Source: Podarcis bocagei (lineage: Eukaryota). Taken from it: DNA of 64,000 nucleotides. The notes below the pieces were generated by a model. The model was not told the DNA's origin. It did no database searches and saw only the letters and a program-made list of their open reading frames with translations. This document shows positions 15,313 to 58,847 of the stretch, piece after piece. The stretch is from NCBI GenBank assembly GCA_964188305.1, contig OZ076890.1. One strand, written 5' to 3'. Numbering within the stretch: position 1 is the first letter of the stretch; each line of letters opens with the position of its first letter. The translations under genes and the position numbers were made by a program.

Positions 15313-15511
15313 AACACAGAAACATAGGAAGCTACCTTATTCTGAGTGAGACCATTGGTCCATCTATAGCTCAGTATTGCCTACCCTGACTGGCAACAAC
15401 TCTTCAAGGTTTCAGACAGAATTTCTCTCCCTGATGTAGCTGGAGATGCCAGGGATTGAATCTGGAACCTTATGTATGCAAAGCAAATGCTCCACTACTA
15501 AGCCATGACCC
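15313..15511 (-). mobile_element. tRNA-derived SINE with CR1-like tail
   Basis: On the plus strand: AACATAGGAAGCTACCTTATTCTGAGTGAGACCATTGGTCCATCTA (tail) and GCCAGGGATTGAATCTGGAACC...TGCTCCACTACTAAGCCATGACCC (tRNA head). Confidence 0.8.
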
Positions 15512-19857: not shown

Positions 19858-21428
19858 GTACAATATTTCTTAGGGGGAAACAGAATTTAAAAAATGCAGA
19901 AACAAGCACATGTGAGGATTGCAAGCAATGAACATTACCTTGAGCCCTTCTCTTTTCAGTTTAGAGTACTGTGTGAGAATATTCTGGATGCTCCCTTACT
20001 TGTGAGAGGCCACAAAGTTTTAGAGAGGGTTATGTTGGTCTTCGCTTTTATACCAGGACACTACCCCAACATCCATGCATTTGGAAACTAAGAAACAAAA
20101 GGGGGTTCACCAATAGTATGTGAGTAGGTAAAGCTTTCTTCTTCTTCCATGTTTCCATGCTAGAGAAGACTAACTTGTTGAACGTCTGTCTTGTACACAG
20201 CTGTTAAATGCAAGGGTGTCTTGCTCTTTTCCATTGCCAATCCTATATCCTGCAAAGAGCTCAGGAATTATCAGTTGTAAACTAATTAGACTTTCACTAA
20301 TTGCTCTTAGGAAGCAATACAACATTCTGTACAAAACAAGGCAAAGTGTTTCAGAAGGTTGTGTGTGTTAAAAGAGATTTAATATTTACAGCAACCACGG
20401 TTCAGGTGCCCATGCTTGGATAAATTCAAGACTGAATTTTTAAACAGCAAGCCATGCATTCTAAAAGCATTTCTTGTGGACATTTATTTATACTTCGTAA
20501 TAATTATAGCAATGTTATCAGCACAGGTCAAGAAGTCACCCTTTGGGGATGGAGCAGCTTTAGCAAAAGAGGGAGATTTGAGTCTTTGACATGAATATAT
20601 ACCCTTTTAAGTGTTTATATCAGCAGCAACAACTCTCAATAATCTGCCTATTTCACACCATGGGTGAGGAAAAAATGAATCACCACTCCCCCCATGTTGC
20701 TCCTAATATCAGCTTAATAGCCTTTCCTGCATTTTCCATAAAGAACCCTAAGATGCCAAGAGAATGGTTGAAGTCAGTGGGCATGACTATGCCCAACTGG
20801 TGTACTCTGAGTAGGATTTCAGAATAAGACCCATATTGATGAGGATCTTCATTTGAATTTGCATTGTTAAAGGTGTGTTTACACACAGGGATGGGGCATT
20901 CAATTAAACCTGAACTAGAAAGAGCATGAAATCCTGTCTCTGTGGCTATCTTTTGTTTTGGGGTAGACATGCTTCTTTTCCAGTCACAGCTACGCTAAAA
21001 TCCTGAATTTCTCAATTTTCTCAAACGGAACCAAGATCTTTCTTCTTCTTTGCTTTAATCTAGAGAAAAACATCCAGAGGCACACACCTACACACTGAGG
21101 AAGAGCTAAAAACAGCTTCAAAATGAATCAGGAAGTCCTCCATTATCTGGGAAAGAGACTTCCTGAAGACTTTATGAAGCCAGTTTTGCATTCTTCCTTG
21201 GGTGCCTGTATGACTAATATTTTTCTATAGCACTCGTCAATCACAGCTCTGACTTCACCCATTAGCTAAGAACATTGAAAGGTATAGACAAGCTCATTTC
21301 TCACCAAGCAATTGCTTACTGCCTGCATATTTTGTTTTGACTCCTCATTTTGCTTCAGACCCCACTTTTTGAAAGAGCTGGATACAGACTTTTTAATAAA
21401 GCGTGTTCTCACTAAAGGAGAGCACATG

Positions 21429-22216
21429 TTGCGGATGGGGCCTAGCAAGACACCCCATAGTTGCCAGGCAGGATAAGATAGAGGGGCCTGGCAAGGATTG
21501 GCTGTTTGTGTTGCTGGGGTAAAATTGATGTTGCCAATTTGGGGGTGGGAACAGAGGTGATTTAAACAAGGTTCACAGCAAGCTGCTTTCTCTTTCGATA
21601 TGGGAACCGGATCACCCGCCCGCCCTCCCTTTTGGGCTTGTGCTTTGACCTTGCTATGCCTGTCATGGGGTCGTCCGCCTTGGTGCGGGGGCCTGGTAGG
21701 AATTTTTCCATTTGGCTGATTAGTGTGTGCCATTTGGTTTTTGCCTACTGCGTAGCAAATCGTCACAACTTGTAAGGTTGGCGGTTAGGCATTGGTTTAA
21801 ATTGGTTGGTGGAGGGGTATGGATTGGCTGTGCCTGCCCCTCCAATGCTGCTGCTGCATGGGAATTCCGTTAAAGGAATTCTGGGGCTTACCATCCTCTT
21901 GTCCAAACCCCTGGAATCGGGTGCGGGCCGCGTAAGACCCCAAGGAGCAAGCGGGGAGGAACTGAAGGGTCTGTGTCGCAGCCCCAGTTGCCCTGATCTT
22001 GTTCCTCCACACTGACTCTCGCTGGAATCCGGGAGTCAGTGCTGTCCCCCAAGGCGGGGGGGGACAGCTAGTCATAACCAATGCCTAAGCAACCACTCAC
22101 AATTTGTATGTTTAATAAAGTTGTGGCCAAAATTATGCCAAAAACCTTAAACAAAAATTTATGAGTGATGTGTGAGTTATTGGGGTAGGGGTGTTTTGGG
22201 GGACCTCAGCACGCAA
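21429..22216 (+). mobile_element. Non-coding LTR-like or DIRS/Ngaro-like interspersed element, copy A; structured, with an ENE-like motif
   Basis: GC/CpG-rich island bounded by TTGCG...CGCAA, with TATA-like TTTAAA at 21561-21566 and AATAAAGTTGTGGCC at 22114. Ordered motifs are shared with 33485-33855 and 56365-57000. No TSD found, so the class is unresolved. Confidence 0.7.
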
Positions 22217-25149
22217 AAACAAAACAAATGAATCCCTGTTTCTGCTTCTTGGTAGGTTTGTTTCTGAATCAGTAAGTAAATCACAGATCCAAACCCTGCC
22301 AGTCCCCTCTTCCCCACTCTGAAAATGAGGACTTTCAGGTAAAGTGGAAATGGCTTAGAAAGCCATCCGATATATGTGTTTGAAAATGGCTTATACAAAC
22401 ACACCAGTAAAAATGATTTCTGCCGGGATAATAGCCTAAGTTGTTGTAATGACTGAACTAGCCTGCATGCATACTCAGTGCAAATTTGTATCAGAGCACG
22501 TGAAGGGAAATATAACACTGGAAGTGTATCTAACAACCATTAGCTAATCCAAGTCTGCCTGTGTGCTCACGTAGCAGTGGTCTTAATTCTCTACATGCTG
22601 ATCCTTATTCAGGCACAATGTTACCACAAACAAACACAACAGGAAGATTTCCTGTTTGGAGGATCATTTGGGTTGGGTGGGGGACAACAAATGATGAAAA
22701 AAAGTCTTCCAAAATTGTTGCAGAGAATGAAAAACAGGGTGTTGGTGTGGCTGAAACCTTGAGCAGAAGCAGACATTTGCAACATTTTGTTACAGATCTG
22801 CTTGTATATAAATATAAATTTTAAAAGAAACCAAACAGCGCTGCAAACTATTTATAAGGGCCACATCCTTCCAAATCAGGCTGATGTTTGCTTAGAACCC
22901 TCTGGGTGAGAGTAACTCTGTTTAATTCAGTGAACAATTATCAACATGACAAGCTACGGTACCGCTGGCATGACAGGCGGACACAGAAGGGGAAGGACTG
23001 GCACTATTGGGATTTTCTCAGGTGCGAGTGGGAGCCCGGCAGGATCAGATACAGTTTGGGGGTCTTTCTTTTCAGCCTGCCATAGCACAGCCACACAGAG
23101 CTGATAGCGTGGGGCTGCTATAAAAGAAACCTATCATCACCCTCCCATCCCTGCTTCTGCTGAGGCCATCTCCAGACTGTTGGTATTTTGCAGGAGGCAT
23201 TCAAGCACGTACCAGGAAATGTAGGTTTGCATAATTAAAGTTGATTAAATTGCTCTGTCACTGTGGTGCACCAGATCCACTTTTTCAAATTAAAAAAGGG
23301 ACTATTTGCAGTTAGGTAGGTGCTGGGGAAATGCACTGAAAAGTGAAGGATGAATGACTGATTACTGGGAAGATCTGCAAACACCATGCAAGCAAATCCA
23401 GATGGATGCTCATTGTTGTATAACCTCTTTGCAAACATCAGAACCAATGTTCAGTAACGACCTGATATAGACTAACCTGCACATATGCTTTGTGTAAGCA
23501 AATCAGGATGCTCAATAAATAGGACATCTGGAGGAGCCCTGAATTACTCTTAGTAATGGGACAGTCTTTTGTAACTGGCATACATTAATTGCACGCAGCC
23601 AGTTGCTAAACTGATTTCTCATCAGCGGGTAATGCACCAGGGTCTGCAGCTGCCCTGCTGTGCCTCATGCCCCTATGGAACCACAGGCAAACCAAACAGC
23701 TTTGCTCATTGGCCCAATCTTTTTTTACTCCCATGTATCACTCTATGTCAACTCCTCTTTTGTTACTCTTCCTGCTGCATTATTTAAGTGAATATATATC
23801 TTCATTATTGCTTTCTATCAGCCTTTCCCTTCAAGGTGGGGTTGCAGGGATAGAATGTAAGGGACATCTATTCAAAATAATCCACTGTACATGTGGGCTT
23901 GAGCATACTGCAGTCATTAAAGAGAAGGCTGAACACCTTAGGGCACCCTGAAATAAGGTAGCTGATTTACTATTGTATTTTGCTCTGGGCAAGGATATTG
24001 CCAGATACTGTACAAGAAACAGAACTTCAGTTTCAAGCTTTCCAAGGAGAAAACACACTACCTATTGCATGAAGAGGTACACTCTGAGCACCCATGTTTC
24101 TGTCTTTCTAAACCCAATCCTTTAAACATTATGGAGAGGCTTAACACACACTTTGGAGTTTCTGCAAGACTCTAGTGATAATTTAGGCAGCAACTAAGGT
24201 GGCATAGCTAGCACCCACCTGACATGGGTAGCTAGCTACACAATTAAGGAAGGTAAATGAATATTCCAACCTTGCTGCACAGTTATTAATTAAACAGGAT
24301 TTCACCCCAGAGGTGGAGGCATTTGTGTAATTAATGTAACCATCTGTGTACGTGGAGGTAGTTTTGCAAAGCACTTAGAAACCCTCTGAGATACAAATGT
24401 GAGATGGTGATGAAGATGGTGATGGCAGCAGTGGAAGTTTTCTCTCTCTCTAAGTGTGGGTTTTGTCTCTGAATACAGTGTCAAATGCTACCCCACTTGC
24501 ACAAGAAAAGACAGTGACATACTGGCAACCTTCACAATGTTTAGGCTGTACATATAAAGTCTTATTAATTATCTGAATAAGGAGTACATAAAGAATGTGG
24601 CCTTTCAGTTCCATTCATATCACCATGCTTGCAGTGAGGATGAGGGTAATGATACAAAGTGTGATGTCAGTTAGCGAGGTCTGCATACAGAAACACATGA
24701 AGGCTGGTGAGTATAATGTAGCATTTGTGCCATACAATATTGTGGAAACTAAGAACAAAAGGTAGACACAATTCCTCAGTCTTCAACTCGTCTTAGCACC
24801 CATCTCAAACACCCAACCTGCAACATGGGACCCACTTTTATTTTGCCACCTTGCCTGAAATCGAATGTGCAGAAAATAAATCTGGGGAACAGTCATTTCC
24901 CTTAGAACATAGTACAGGCAGCACTTTTCTTTGTTAGATGCTGTAGTTTGTGGGATTTATGGCCAGCAGCTTCTCTTACTCTGAAGCAATACCAAAAGTA
25001 TTTTTTCCCTTTTATTTTGCAATGCCTTGCCATTTTATTTATTTCATCAATTTACTTAGGTAAAAAGTGACTAATTTTCACTTTCACCCCAATTCCTGCC
25101 CCCTGCATTTCTGCCACCCCATTGCCCAAGACAACTTGCAAGGTTCCCT

Positions 25150-32965: not shown

Positions 32966-33484
32966 TCTTTCTATTTTTACTGTCTATCCTTTTGGAGAAA
33001 GGGTGTGTGTAGCATCTTTGAGCATAGTATACAAAACACATTTCTTATTCATTTTATAACAGTTGCTTATCTCACCCTCCCAATACCCTTCTTTCCCCCT
33101 TTTAAAAGACATGCATTATGCAGGGTAGTAAATGACTGGAAAAGGAGGTGCAGAAAAAACTATAAATTGTAGATGACAAACCTGAAACATGGGTGCCACA
33201 AGTGGAATAGGCAGCAACGTGGTAACAGGATCAGTACTGTTTGTGGATTAGATATGAAATTGAACCAGGCATGCACTGGTGCTTTTTTTTTTTTTTTTAC
33301 TTGCTCAGTTGCCAGGGGGGCACCTATGCATTGTAGCACACACTGCAGTGGTGCTATATCATACTTTGGACAAATTGTAGCAATGCCATTGGAGTTTTAA
33401 TTATCTGATTTGAAATATGAATTTGTTGAGTTGCTAATAGCCAGATACCTCTATGCTTGTGGGCTACCCAATGGCATGTGCCTT

Positions 33485-33855
33485 CAGACAGATTGGGCCT
33501 TTCTGGGGGTTTCGCCTACCTCACGGCAAGTGTCACAACTTTATGGTGAATCCATTGGGCTGGATCTTTAATTGAACCAGACAGGGGGTGCCCCTTGCTC
33601 CTTGGGATCAAGGTATCCCTTTAATGGGATCCTGGGGGAAGTGGTTTTATCCTGATGCCCAGATGGGAGCTGACAGGCTATAGGACACCAAGTGGTGACC
33701 TTGAGGGGGTTGCCCTGATTTGATGTTCTCCATAGGGCAACTCTTAACCATGTCTAGCATCCACCAGCGATCAAGCTGGTTGATGTCAGGATATGCATCC
33801 AATGCTGATGCCAAAACCTGCTAACTTCTATAATCAATAAAAGTTGTGGTCTGTA
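33485..33855 (+). mobile_element. Non-coding element copy B (5'-truncated relative of 21429-22216)
   Basis: GGTTTCGCCTACCTCACGGCAA.TGTCACAACTT (33508-33541), ATCCCTTTAATGGGAT hairpin, GTTGCCCTGAT, CCAATGC..GCCAAAACC and AATAAAAGTTGTGG (33836-33849), in the same order as copy A. Confidence 0.7.
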
Positions 33856-35794
33856 TGAAATCCCGATATGGTTGTCTTTAGTTACAACTAACATCATGAC
33901 TGCCCCATCCTATCCACAGATCCATTGTGCCTGGGCCCATAAGTAAGCTTCATTGAGTCAATAGGACTTACTTCCAGCTAAGTGTGCAAGACTTAGTTGT
34001 GATGCATGTGTGAAACATGGATCCTTATAGGATTGGTCCATCTAATTTGCTATTGGCCTCACTGACTGGCAGTGACTCCAGAATTTGAGGCAGGAACTTT
34101 CCCTACCCAAAGACACCAGATACTAAATGTTGGACCTTCTGAATTCAAAGCATTTGCTCCACCACTGCAAAAGGAGAAGCTTTGAAAATAACAACAGACA
34201 AAACAAAACTACTATGACTGAGATGAATCAGTGATAACACTTGGGTCAATTCCATTTTTTCCCCTGCAAACACAAGGATGCTGTTTTCCTCTAAGGCACT
34301 GAAACCCTCTTGTGTTTCTGAGAGAGGCCTCAGTGGTGGTTGGATTTCCAAGCAGCTTGCCAACATCACTGGTTCTAAAACTAAAATTCCAGGGGCAGGG
34401 TAGTGGTAAAATGAAAAGCATATGAGTGTGCGTGCTTCAACATTACAAGCTGGTAGATAATCCTTAGTAAACAAATACGCTTTGTTCAAACACATGCCTA
34501 GAAATTCATAAATATCAAACTGATTCCATAGAGCTGAAGGGAGTTCCCCCTTCAATTTTGAACTATAGTACAGTTGCTAAGAAAGTACCCTACCAATCTC
34601 CCACTTTAATACTCTTGCTGTATTGACATTGACTCTTTCCCCTATCTTTTGCTTTGAAAAAACAGGGATCAATCAGCTAAACTAAACAGTTTCAACTGGA
34701 GAAATTTCAGTATAGCCTACTCCTCCTCTTCTAATGTCAGGATTGTAACCAAATTGTTTTGTGGATACAATCATTTTCCATGGTTGCAAAGAACCTTTGG
34801 GGAAGCAGTTCAGTTCTACCATGCACCCAGCTTCCTTTCATGTTTACTGTGTATTTCGTGTGTATCACATGTGCTCTCTCTGTATGCTTTTCCTGGGGCT
34901 ATGATCATAAGAAGTTTCCTTCCCTGTCACATGTACTATATGTTGAAATCTGTGATCTACTATTAATAAAAACAGGTAGTGTGTGAACTGAAAATGAGAG
35001 TGGGTTTTGAAAGCACATTTTTAGAAACACAATAAATGTTTTCCTTTCATTTCCTTTCAAATGTGCCTGCATTCTCAATGTTTCATTTTTCTTCTTTTTA
35101 ATGGTTAAGAAAAACTGATAACCAAAATTTTTAGATTCCCAATAGAAATAGATATACACACACCGCTACCAACAAGCCCTGGTTTCATTCATCAAAACTT
35201 GCTTTCCTTTTTTTTAGAAAATAGAAAGAATTTTATCAGGGTGGAAAATCTTTCATAATTTTTTATTTGGAGGAATGATTGTTTGAAAAAAGAAAACTGT
35301 TTCCATTAGAAAACTTTTGATGGACTCATGGTAGATGTGACTCTGTAGGTAGCAATATACTTAGAATGAAGCAATACATTTAGAGGAGAGCCAGGGAGGA
35401 TAATCAATCTAGAGGCTGGCTTATCAGATGAGAGTGTTGGTCTTCTGTGCATTTATGAGGGATAGACCTGCTTAGTATTTTGCTCATGATGTGTTCTCCT
35501 ACCTCTGTGAACCAAAATGACTCTCCTCTGATTCTAGAGTATGCATCTTAATTTAGTTTGCTCATAAATACCTTGTTAAGCAATAGTCCAGCCTCTAGAG
35601 ATCACACCAAGAGTTCAGTTTCACACCCCTGTCAATTCTCTGTACTGTACCCAAGCGAAAGTAAGGAGGTCCAGCTTACACTGGCCATAAAGTCTATTAA
35701 TCTCTGAATGAATGTGTATTTTTGCAACATATTCAGCTCCATCAGCAGTGTAGCATTTCCATTATTTTCCTTAAGGCAAGCCATGTCAAGAGTA

Positions 35795-55200: not shown

Positions 55201-56364
55201 GCAACAAGGACATGGGCGGCAGCAATCCGACAGCAGAGCAAATTGGTCAGGACAGAGTGGATTGATCTATCTGGGAGAAATGAAGACACAGCAGAAACTC
55301 TGTTTTATGAGTGGGGATGGCTTTTGGCCTCTCTTACACTTGGCCAAGAAAGACAGGAGTATAACAGCAGCAAGGACATATTGTGAATCAAGCCAAGCAT
55401 CCTAGTGCCAGATCCCTACCTACAGATTAGTTGTCTGAAATGACTGTCTGTGCAGACAAGCACAGTCACCCAGCATATCTTAAGAGTATACTACTAGAAC
55501 TGCGTTCATAAGGCAAAAAGCCACCACATGACTGCTCTTGGTTGTTGCTTTTTTCCTAGGCTTTCCCCCTTCAATGTCTTCTGCTTCCTTTTTTCCATAG
55601 TACTAGCCGGACTGATGACTCTGTCCTCCATATATGCAAATCCAAGGCACATCTTGGTTTCATTTCAAACACTCATATTTAACAGCAGGAATAAAAATAA
55701 CAGAATGTCCTACCTTGCGTTTGCATTTGTGCAAAAGCATTTACCCAGGACCTATCTTGTACAAAGTGCTGAACAGAGCACAGAAGTAGCTTAAGTGCAA
55801 TCACATGTAGAATAAGGGGAAGGGCTTACAGGTCACTGACATGACTCTCAGACACACCTGATAGTCTTCATTTTAGAAATAATAAATCCAGGTAACTTAT
55901 TAAGTGTGCATATAAACCTGCTGCCACTGTCATCACTGGCTCTCTTTAATGAGGTTCTCATTAAGTCGTTTCAGCTTTGGAACACAGCATCCCACCTCCA
56001 TTGGGATGCAATGATTTGTTCCTTCCTGTAATGCAAAATTAGAAGCTAAAGAAAAAGTTTCCATGTCTTGGAAAATGGAATGTTGGGAGTCACATACAGG
56101 ACCCTCAAAGGTATTGGTTAAACAAATCCTGGCTACACTTTCACTCACTTTCATTCACTAAAACACTCACTTATCAAAATAATACAAGGATTTTCCTGCA
56201 GATTTCTGAAAGATATTTCATTTCACAAGCATAGCGACATGAATTTTTGGTTCATAATCATTTAGAACATCATGCAGGTGATTCCTTGCCACCTCAGGCA
56301 TGAAGTCTGCAGCTGATGTGGGTAAGACTGAGGAAATGAACACAAGAATCGGTACTGGGTTGAA

Positions 56365-57000
56365 TTAGGCCACACCTTTATTGATTACAGGTAAGAGTAG
56401 GTTTGGCTAAGTCATTGGCCAAATTGTATCTGGCATCAGAACGCCTACATGCTGGCTGATAGGAACCCAGTGGATCAACTGTGTGCTGGGGAGTCACCCA
56501 AAAAATGGATTAGCTGCCACGACCCCGTATGGACCTGCCATTCGGAGCTGTTTTGGCCCATTGGTCTGCAAGTGTGGACTCCCAGACCGATTCACGCCTC
56601 TTGGATTCCTTTAACTGGGTACCTGCATGATGAATATCCATCAAAGTTGTGACAGTTGCTATGAGGTAGGTAAAAACCTTTACACTGGTCAATTTGCTTG
56701 CAGGAGAAAATTCCTCTCTAGCCCCAAATACAGCAACCGATTAAGCACAGCAAGGTTCTTACATCAACTTGCCCACTCCCCCATTGAGGGGGCCCCTAAC
56801 AGTCTGGGTGAGTGGGAGGTAAATTCTGCATTGGTCCCCAAGGGTGGGCAGGGCACAGCCCCCATGCCCATGCCCCGATAGGCTTGCAGGCAAGGCCCAC
56901 CCAAACAATGGGTTCAGCATGGCCAGGGGAGGCCAACATCAAATGGCCATCCCCTCCCCCATCTATCCAGGACAAGGAGTTTATCCCTGGATCCAGCCAC
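56365..57000 (-). mobile_element. Non-coding element copy C (relative of 21429-22216)
   Basis: The minus strand reads AGGAATTTTCTCC...AGGTTTTTACCTACCTCATAGCAACTGTCACAACTTT...GTTAAAGGAATCC...CCAATGACTTAGCCAAACC...AATAAAGGTGTGGCC. The 5' boundary is approximate. Confidence 0.7.
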
Positions 57001-58847
57001 ATTCTCACTGTGTGGCAAACACTGGACCCCCTCCTGTTGAGACATTAATTGAACACATTGGTTAGGCAATTGTGCCCACTGTTCCCACTTCAGACTTCCA
57101 TGCATTTATAGGCCTCTTTTATAGGTTCCCCAATCCTGTTGGCTGTGAAGGAGCTCAGAATAGGATATATTCCTTAACTATGCCCTGATTATGGAATTCC
57201 TTGTCTCAGAGGACTAGCATGTCATCGTCCTTTATGACATTTTATGTCAGGTTGAAAACATTCTTCTGACATGCTTTCTAGAAAGATAATTATGAGCCAA
57301 AATGTGTCAACTAACTTAGCAATAAGAGGGTGATTGTTTTACCAATAATTGGTGCTATTATGAATGGTCATTGGACTTCTTTTACATGCACACATTTAGG
57401 TTTGCAATCTCAAGGGGTGGAGAGTGGACTAAAGACAAACAATGAAAGGGAAATTAGAGGGAGAATCTTAGATTGCCTTCTGAGCTAGTCAAAATCTCCC
57501 CCCAGTTTTGGAGCATGTCAGGTGGCTGAGATGGCTTTGTATACTTCAGATCCAAGCTGTTTCCGGATCCTCCATTGACAGATCCCCAGTAACACCCCTC
57601 CCCCTAATCTTGACCTCACTACTGTTGCAGAACTGACATCACTAGGGCCAGGGTGTTCCCATAGGGGCAGGAAGGAGCTTACTCCCTGACATCACAACCC
57701 TCTCTCCAGTGATGTACAGGGAATGTCAATGTTTCCTATGACCCCTGAGACACCCTCCCATGGGCCATAGGTTTTCAGATCCAGATTTAATTGAATTTTC
57801 ACAGTCTGTGCATTTGCATTTCATTGCCACTCGACTCCTTTCTCCTTAGTTTTTCTTTACAACTGTATATTCCTGTCAACTGAGGAAAACACATGCATCT
57901 AATGGTTTAAGGTCCTCCAAACTGCAAGAGTTAGACTAACACCTTTATCCCACCTTACTTTAAATCATAACTGGTACAGGTTCATTTTCAACATGGCTAT
58001 AAAGGTAGAGTTTGAATACTATAGCTTTTGTCCTCCACTGCCCAACTTTTAAATAATGATTCCTGTAGTTCCAGTTATTCTTTTCTTCTGTGTTTTAAGT
58101 CCTTTATACAACTCCTTAATGAGCACAAAAGACAACATCATAACTTCCTAAGTATACTGCCCTTGACTGAGAGACCCAAATGGTATACACTATTTCTAAA
58201 GCATTTGATTCATTAATATACTCAAATGCTGTTCACGGTCTTTCCTCCTCTAAACTGACTTCCAGTATTGAACCAGATACTCTATTGACTTGTATTTTCT
58301 TATGATCCTTTATACGTATCTGCTGACTGACTGATCTTTCTCAGCAGCTATGCTCCTCTGCTATATATTTGTAAATTTGGCTTTCCTGTACTATATGCAG
58401 CACACTCCATTTGTCTCTGGTGAAAATTTACCCCACTTAGCTACAACTTATCAAGATATTTATGAATTCCAGTCTTCCCCCTTCTGAAATGTCAATATTC
58501 TTTCCCAGCCTTCTGGCATTTGAAAACCTGAGATCCAAGTAGTTTTTATCCAAATTACAGATGAAAGTCACGAACATTATGAATACAGCGACAATCATTA
58601 CAGACAAAGTTCAATTTGTTGCCTCATGCAAGTATGGAAACAAACTACTAACTGGTATTTCTTGCTACGAGGTTACATTAGACATTCAAATTAGCCACCA
58701 ATTCTTTTGCTTCCATGTTACATGTTCTATCTCTTACCATAAGCTCTCTCATCCACTTAGTGAAGTTACACAATTTTTTAAATTAAAAATCCTGCCTTAA
58801 TTAAGAACTCTTTTTAGAAAATGTTTGCAACACTGACGTGTTATACT

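Follow-up and report, generated by a model that had tools for sequence, protein, structure and literature searches.

An ENE-like hairpin in an abundant LTR-like repeat of a lizard genome is probably a fortuitous look-alike

A hairpin in the genome of the lizard Podarcis bocagei raises a direct question: does an abundant mobile element of this animal carry a working ENE, or does its sequence merely fold into the shape of one? An ENE is a stem-loop whose U-rich internal loop adjoins G-C pairs engaged in A-minor contacts; in PAN, five U-A-U triples and three A-minor triples are formed (PMC7583470). These contacts depend on G-C pairs lying right beside the U-rich loop, and such pairs are reported to be indispensable (PMC7583470; PMC12501189), and in the Evade retrotransposon U-to-C changes or changes of the adjacent G-C pairs abolish the triplex (PMC12501189). 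A first-pass annotation of the 64-kb stretch of DNA analyzed here (the window) had placed an ENE-like motif at 21695-21749, inside a non-coding mobile element. We call the element unit A, or copy A where it is compared with its relatives; it and its surroundings comprise the following features.

21401-21425 and 22213-22230, plus strand: outer flanks of unit A, GCGTGTTCTC-ACTAAAG-GAGAGCAC on one side and GC-AAAAACAAAACAAATG on the other
21421-21425 and 22208-22212, plus strand: AGCAC direct repeat, candidate target-site duplication (direct reading)
21426-22207, plus strand: repeat unit A, about 780 bp, LTR-like, without ORFs (direct reading and depth profile)
21483-21505, plus strand: GGGGCCTGGCAAGGATT(GGCTGT), paralogue of the hairpin's 5' arm; GGGGCCTGGCAAGGATT (21483-99) is a direct repeat of GGGGCCTGGTAGGAATT at 21688-21704
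21736-21771, plus strand: conserved block of about 36 nt, GGTTTTTgCCTACnnnnnGCAAnTnGTCACAACTT, kept in copies A, B and C and opening at the 3' U tract
22114-22128, plus strand: AATAAAGTTGTGGCC, poly(A)-signal-like (or TATA-like), kept in copies A, B and C, on the same strand as the T tracts

The element that hosts the motif has a high copy number and no credible ORF. When contigs of a related lizard DNA run were compared with 21000-22600 at 80% likeness, the summed depth rose in sharp steps from 29 (single-copy) outside to between 7e3 and 3.8e5 from 21401 to 22230, up to about 10^4 times the single-copy depth. Two very deep cores, 21648-21917 and 22026-22187, have depths of 2-3.8e5, and positions 21742-21752, at 3.8-5.8e5, are among the deepest part of the family profile. 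Because 719 of the DNA contigs over the unit A region are at least 99% alike, the family must be large and at least partly young.

The ends of the unit resemble those of an LTR. It opens (A)TG and closes CTC(A), with TG at 21427-28 and CA at 22207-08. The flanking AGCAC repeat matches in all five bases, though it is shifted by one base relative to these termini; in an alternative reading, GCACA at 21422-26 and GCACG at 22209-13 (4/5) are in register with TG...CA. When unit A and one copy of the repeat are removed, the flanks read GCGTGTTCTC-ACTAAAG-GAGAGCACGC-AAAAACAAAACAAATG, a 10-bp stem-loop followed by an A-rich tail, probably the 3' end of an older retroposon that received unit A. In one contig of the related run, 21400 is followed by 22231 across a stretch of unknown letters, which suggests a site without the insert.

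Unit A is most likely a solo LTR, the alternative being a solo terminal unit of a tyrosine-recombinase element. Like a solo LTR (U3-R-U5), it has about 780 bp without an ORF, TG...CA ends, short flanking repeats, CCAAT modules, AATAAA near the 3' end, many copies and what appears to be an empty site in the related run; unlike the textbook case, it comes with no paired LTRs, PBS or PPT, none of which was seen in the 64-kb window, and its target-site duplication is ambiguous. It shares with Ngaro/DIRS terminal repeats the lack of ORFs in the repeat unit and the structured RNA-like segments, but its flanking 5-bp direct repeat argues for an integrase-type insertion. Ngaro elements have split direct repeats in the order A1...B1-A2-B2 (PMC9210276). 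Around copies A, B and C we found neither this arrangement nor remnants of YR, RT or SGNH; the test is a weak one, because a solo unit would show neither split repeats nor YR/RT ORFs. A Pfam search with ten ORFs of at least 120 aa gave no hit, and so no transposon protein by which related loci could be reached; no autonomous partner was found in the window.

Several other structures in and around unit A deserve mention. At 22011-22068 on the plus strand, two perfect hairpins stand side by side, with stems of 11 bp and 10 bp (-39.5 kcal/mol, z = -3.4), in the lower-copy middle of the unit (21918-22025 and beyond), a part that many family members do not have: RNA-type contigs show the joints 21904>22076 and 21910>22058. 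A perfect 13-nt inverted repeat, TTAGGCATTGGTT at 21785-21797 and AACCAATGCCTAA at 22076-22088, has arms 278 nt apart, each with a CCAAT box, and represents either a long-range pairing or one binding site in both orientations. Upstream of the unit, 21231-21281 on the plus strand looks like an exon, with AG at 21229-30 and GT at 21282-83. It is covered by stranded RNA reads from a related organism, with six consistent differences, and at either border the loose ends of the reads look spliced (...CCTAAACAACT in front of it, CAGCAGCAGCAGCC... after it). This places unit A about 145 nt downstream of an exon, in sense orientation and with its own AATAAA. Elsewhere in the window, 15441-15510 on the minus strand gives a borderline Rfam tRNA match, at 29.8 bits where the gathering score is 29; it probably represents the head of a SINE derived from a tRNA.

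Direct reading confirmed the claimed layout of the motif itself, GGTAGG-AA-TTTTT-CCA-TT-TGGC-12 nt loop-GCCA-TT-TGG-TTTTT-G-CCTACT, which divides as follows.

21695-21749, plus strand: ENE-like hairpin (copy A; sequence and folding)
21695-21700 with 21744-21749, plus strand: lower stem
21701-02, plus strand: 5' spacer, AA
21703-07, plus strand: 5' U5 strand
21708-10 with 21735-37, and 21713-16 with 21729-32, plus strand: upper stem
21717-28, plus strand: terminal loop, 12 nt
21738-42, plus strand: 3' U5 strand
21743, plus strand: 3' spacer, G

Folding of copy A with RNAfold reproduced the claimed lower stem, two U5 strands and upper stem as both the MFE and the centroid structure. When 21427-22140 was folded whole, all 13 pairs of the hairpin had probabilities of 0.84-1.0 within this 714 nt context, and both U tracts were unpaired at 0.84-1.0. 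Compared with dinucleotide shuffles, the hairpin is only modestly more stable (trimmed 66 nt, z = -2.4; 76 nt, z = -1.06). On the upper side of the U-rich loop, C21708-G21737 and C21709-G21736 are flush with the U tracts, while on the lower side G21700-C21744 is set off from them by AA (5') and G (3'). By these predictions, the hairpin in copy A is real and thermodynamically robust.

To gauge how often the shape arises by chance, we used a descriptor requiring two T5 tracts separated by 15-75 nt, a flush inner stem (3 bp or more) and an outer stem (5 bp or more, offset by 0-2 nt). It matched once in the 64-kb window, at the 21695-21749 motif, and gave a mean of 0.21 matches in dinucleotide-shuffled 64-kb windows, with at least one match in 20/100 shuffles. 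At this rate the ENE-like shape alone is not beyond chance at genome scale, and many chance shapes are therefore expected in a genome this large and in its set of repeats. A 96 nt query of Rfam 15, with E up to 10, returned no ENE-like or other credible match, Rfam's ENE model content being uncertain. The similar motif that the first-pass annotation places in vertebrate CR1 3' UTRs, as part of a putative module shared across retroelement classes, is absent from the 64-kb window by pattern search.

Within the young family, conservation of the U tracts did not hold up: variants with U4C in either tract are abundant, and the tracts of copies B and C are altered as well. The 3' tract is T5 at 92% of the DNA depth at 21742, where T>C makes up 8% of the DNA depth versus 40-73% of the depth in the RNA runs. 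On the 5' side the commonest tract variant in the DNA run is AGGAATTTTTCCC; tracts of T3, T4, T5 and T6 are all present, T6 at 11% of the depth. DNA contigs show the 5' arm itself as AGGAATTTTTCCCAC and 35 single-cell reads show it as GGAATTTTCCCCAC; CAGGAATTTCCCCAC is a further form. In a triple-helix model, U4C changes in the 5' and 3' tracts would each cost a different layer of the triple helix. In the family, the terminal loop is TGATTGGCTGT, an inverted CCAAT box (seen in loose ends at 21727/21728), and the window copy has TGATTAGTGTGT; judged by sequence, the loop of the window copy is decayed, with ATTAGTGTGT against the family's ATTGGCTGT. Among the best-supported positions listed, the variable positions of the hairpin are mostly in loops. 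Not all of the dominant variants, as approximately reconstructed, fold into the ENE-like shape.

Two diverged copies of the unit lie in the window.

33300-33860 (approximate), plus strand: copy B, diverged; conserved block with GGGGGTTTCG, without the 5' U tract; AATAAAAGTTGTGGTC at about 33836
56345-57045 (approximate), minus strand: copy C, diverged; AGGAATTTTC at 56706-56715, GGTTTTTACCTACC at 56665-56678, AATAAAGGTGTGGCC at 56368-82

Both were missed in the window by blastn and nhmmer with unit A as query, and were found by motif patterns only. Copies A, B and C have in common, in the same order, the islands GTTGCCA, the block of about 36 nt, TTAAAGG/TTAATGG, CCAATG and AATAAAGkTGTGGyC; the consensus of the block is GG(T)TTTnnCCTACnnnnnGCAAnT(n)GTCACAACTT. 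No target-site duplication is recognizable for copy B or C. In copy B (33466-33520), the claim that the 3' half of the motif is kept stands only in outline: the 3' side is present as GGGGGTTTCGCCTACC, with UUUC replacing U5, and there is no 5' half. The block is nevertheless carried as GGGGGTTTCGCC, although copy B has neither the 5' U tract nor the 5' arm.

Copy C (56665-56718, minus strand) had been said to keep both U tracts with a different upper stem. It does keep two U-rich tracts, but as TTTTC and TTTTT rather than two T5, and it retains AGGAATTTTC and GGTTTTTACC. The different upper stem can be drawn, yet the ENE-like fold has only -3.6 kcal/mol compared with -15.6 kcal/mol for the MFE structure, in which the two U-rich arms are paired with each other; at 12 kcal/mol above the MFE, its ensemble probability is about 1e-9. 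The best such drawing has a lower stem of AGG/CCU and GAG/CUC and an upper stem of CC/GG and UGCA/UGUA. We counted the pairs shared by A and C by hand, because MAFFT set the 5' arm one base out of register. At positions homologous to the pairs of A, copy C could form 4/6 of the lower-stem and 3/7 of the upper-stem pairs, and its sole two-sided change is isolated between mismatches, so that no meaningful covariation is found among the three diverged copies. The AGGAATTTT and GGTTTTT islands are identical in A and C, while the sequence between them and upstream has diverged. The proposed resemblance to a single-domain ENE survives as the gross architecture of copy A; it departs from an ENE at the spacers of the lower junction, and neither covariation nor the folds of B and C back it.

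Searches for further copies beyond the window added nothing. Exact-pattern scans of viral contigs and of metagenome contigs gave no further copies. Three metagenome loci (L001, L002 and L003) matched a degenerate 19-base pattern of the block; their sequences are unrelated, and we therefore regard them as chance matches. The antisense 166-aa ORF across the motif, used as bait for ORFs on other copies, found no match. Two further observations concern the copies themselves. At the TTAAAGG/TTAATGG island there is a small hairpin in A (21861-21882, plus strand; stem GGAAUUCC/GGAAUUCU) and in B (33613-33633, plus strand; stem AUCCC/GGGAU), weak in C; it could reflect a stem kept by compensatory change or a palindromic site. 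In the region upstream of copy B, and preceding a T16 run there, 33244-33271 resembles 33556-33583 (75% over 28 nt), the segment after B's conserved block, of which it is a second partial copy; this duplicate may reflect a tandem or nested arrangement.

RNA reads were examined over the same region. The bulk RNA run is stranded, as calibrated on the exon-like 21231-21281, whose AG/GT and nearly all of whose first mates are on the plus strand. Reads over the hairpin come from both strands (20.8 vs 17.5), and the opposite strand dominates over the 3' part. RNA depth over unit A largely follows DNA copy number, and no read-end pile-ups or defined molecule starts or ends were found in about 150 reads per run. 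With reads on both strands and no such ends, these samples, at this depth, show no sign of abundant sense polyadenylated RNA of the family.

How, then, did an ENE-like shape come to lie in this repeat? The internal structure of unit A points to an answer. The 5' arm, GGGGCCTGGTAGGAATT, belongs to a module that is present three times in the unit, GGyAwGGATTGGCTGT; besides the paralogue at 21483-21505, an internal repeat search found a third module, in which GGCAAGGATTGGCTGT recurs as GGTATGGATTGGCTGT at 21816-31. Judging by these direct repeats, the 5' arm is apparently one of three paralogous modules with a CCAAT box. The 3' arm, for its part, is the start of the block of about 36 nt, kept as primary sequence with or without a 5' partner. 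Compared in this way, the two arms of the hairpin have separate histories. The module of the 5' arm, like the family loop TGATTGGCTGT, appears to carry an inverted CCAAT box, so the segment most likely acts, if at all, as DNA: it would be part of the unit's U3-like enhancer/promoter array, and RNA from it would be mostly passive read-through. The enhancer reading draws weak support, because CCAAT enrichment is modest in A (8 versus 3.5 expected, P = 0.02) and absent as a significant signal from B and C. Unit A also has what we take to be likenesses to NF-kappaB, YY1 and NFI sites, and its U5-like end presumably resembles the MLV U5 end; we give these no weight.

We therefore favor, with a probability of roughly 0.55, the interpretation that the hairpin is a fortuitous ENE look-alike in an abundant LTR-like repeat, its arms being a conserved block and a duplicated promoter-like module. 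Several observations count against it: the identical U-rich islands in A and C are also predicted by a functional U-rich loop, the hairpin of copy A is very well defined, the variable positions listed for the hairpin are mostly in loops, the CCAAT enrichment is weak, and the old single copies B and C may have lost a fold through decay of their own. A rival reading is a functional single-domain ENE, in which the U5 strands would clamp poly(A) in U-A-U triples, slow deadenylation and raise the level of retroelement RNA, acting in sense transcripts including the U3-R of a 3' LTR. The architecture of copy A is robust, with unpaired U tracts and C-G pairs flush above them; A and C retain the two U-rich islands; and the hairpin is on the strand of the conserved AATAAA. 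By DNA depth, U5 is dominant on both sides in a young family of thousands of copies, and there is precedent in the ENEs predicted in stickleback retroviruses (PMC7583470). We nevertheless consider this reading unlikely. No meaningful covariation accompanies the fold, which has a probability of about 1e-9 in C and lacks its 5' strand in B; U4C variants are abundant, especially in the RNA runs; spacers (AA and G) stand between the U tracts and the G-C pairs of the lower stem; and the hairpin lies about 365 nt upstream of AATAAA. The RNA reads have no sense-strand bias or defined 3' ends, the shape is expected about 0.2 times per 64 kb by chance, and the Rfam search gave no match. A MALAT1-like arrangement was also considered, since GTTTTTGC (21737-44) is the perfect complement of GCAAAAAC (22213-20); we rejected this pairing as probably coincidental, because the A-rich tail is found beyond the flanking direct repeat and, with 21401-21425, probably makes up the stem-loop and tail of the host retroposon.

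The hairpin might instead serve RNA in another way, in recognition, packaging or dimerization for the proteins of an autonomous partner, with the 36-nt block as the real signal and the hairpin presenting it. No part of the unit is better conserved or deeper than the block, GGTTTTTnCCTAC...GCAA...GTCACAACTT, further strong hairpins occur in the unit (for example 22011-22068, z = -3.4), and non-autonomous units without ORFs need signals in cis. This possibility is equally doubtful, for the block is conserved as sequence with no conserved pairing partner, the window contains no autonomous partner, and the RNA reads lie on both strands. At the other extreme, the hairpin may be functionless, a neutral by-product of internal duplications, the similarity of the copies reflecting common descent only. 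The chance expectation of the shape, the internal paralogy of the 5' arm and the decayed loop of the window copy (ATTAGTGTGT vs ATTGGCTGT) all fit such an origin. We consider it just as improbable as the two RNA-based readings. Against it, the 36-nt block and the AGGAATTTT island stand out from the sequence around them by much stronger conservation between A and C, a sign of some constraint.

It is instructive to compare the lizard hairpin with ENEs that are already known. The KSHV PAN ENE shares with it two facing U5 strands between helices, UUUUUCC...GGUUUUU above them, and a G-C-rich lower stem. Unlike PAN, the lizard motif has the AA/G spacers at the lower stem, lies about 365 nt from the nearest AATAAA, which is downstream on the same strand, is accompanied by neither covariation nor abundant RNA, and is known from sequence and a predicted fold. 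The ENEs of LTR retrotransposons (plant, fungal, Arabidopsis Evade/Copia93, and those predicted in stickleback retroviruses) resemble it in their position, in a 3' non-coding LTR-like part on the sense strand. The plant ENEs mostly have two domains and are backed by covariation or by reporter/melting assays (PMC7583470, PMC12501189), whereas the lizard motif is single-domain, its U tracts vary (U3-U6, U4C), and its fold is lost in diverged copies.

Because ENEs in LTR retroelements are already known, the lizard hairpin is at best one more. Its main value at present is cautionary: this high-copy family will turn up in many parts of the genome, its ENE-like shape recurs there by descent, and this recurrence is not independent support. 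Should the hairpin prove functional after all, which we think improbable, a working ENE in a lizard retroelement with thousands of copies would be the first transposable-element ENE in an amniote, and RNA of the element would escape deadenylation more readily. If it binds poly(A), ENE-type protection, described for LTR elements of plants and fungi and predicted for fish retroviruses, would extend to a highly successful reptile repeat, and would offer a testable reason for the abundance of the family.
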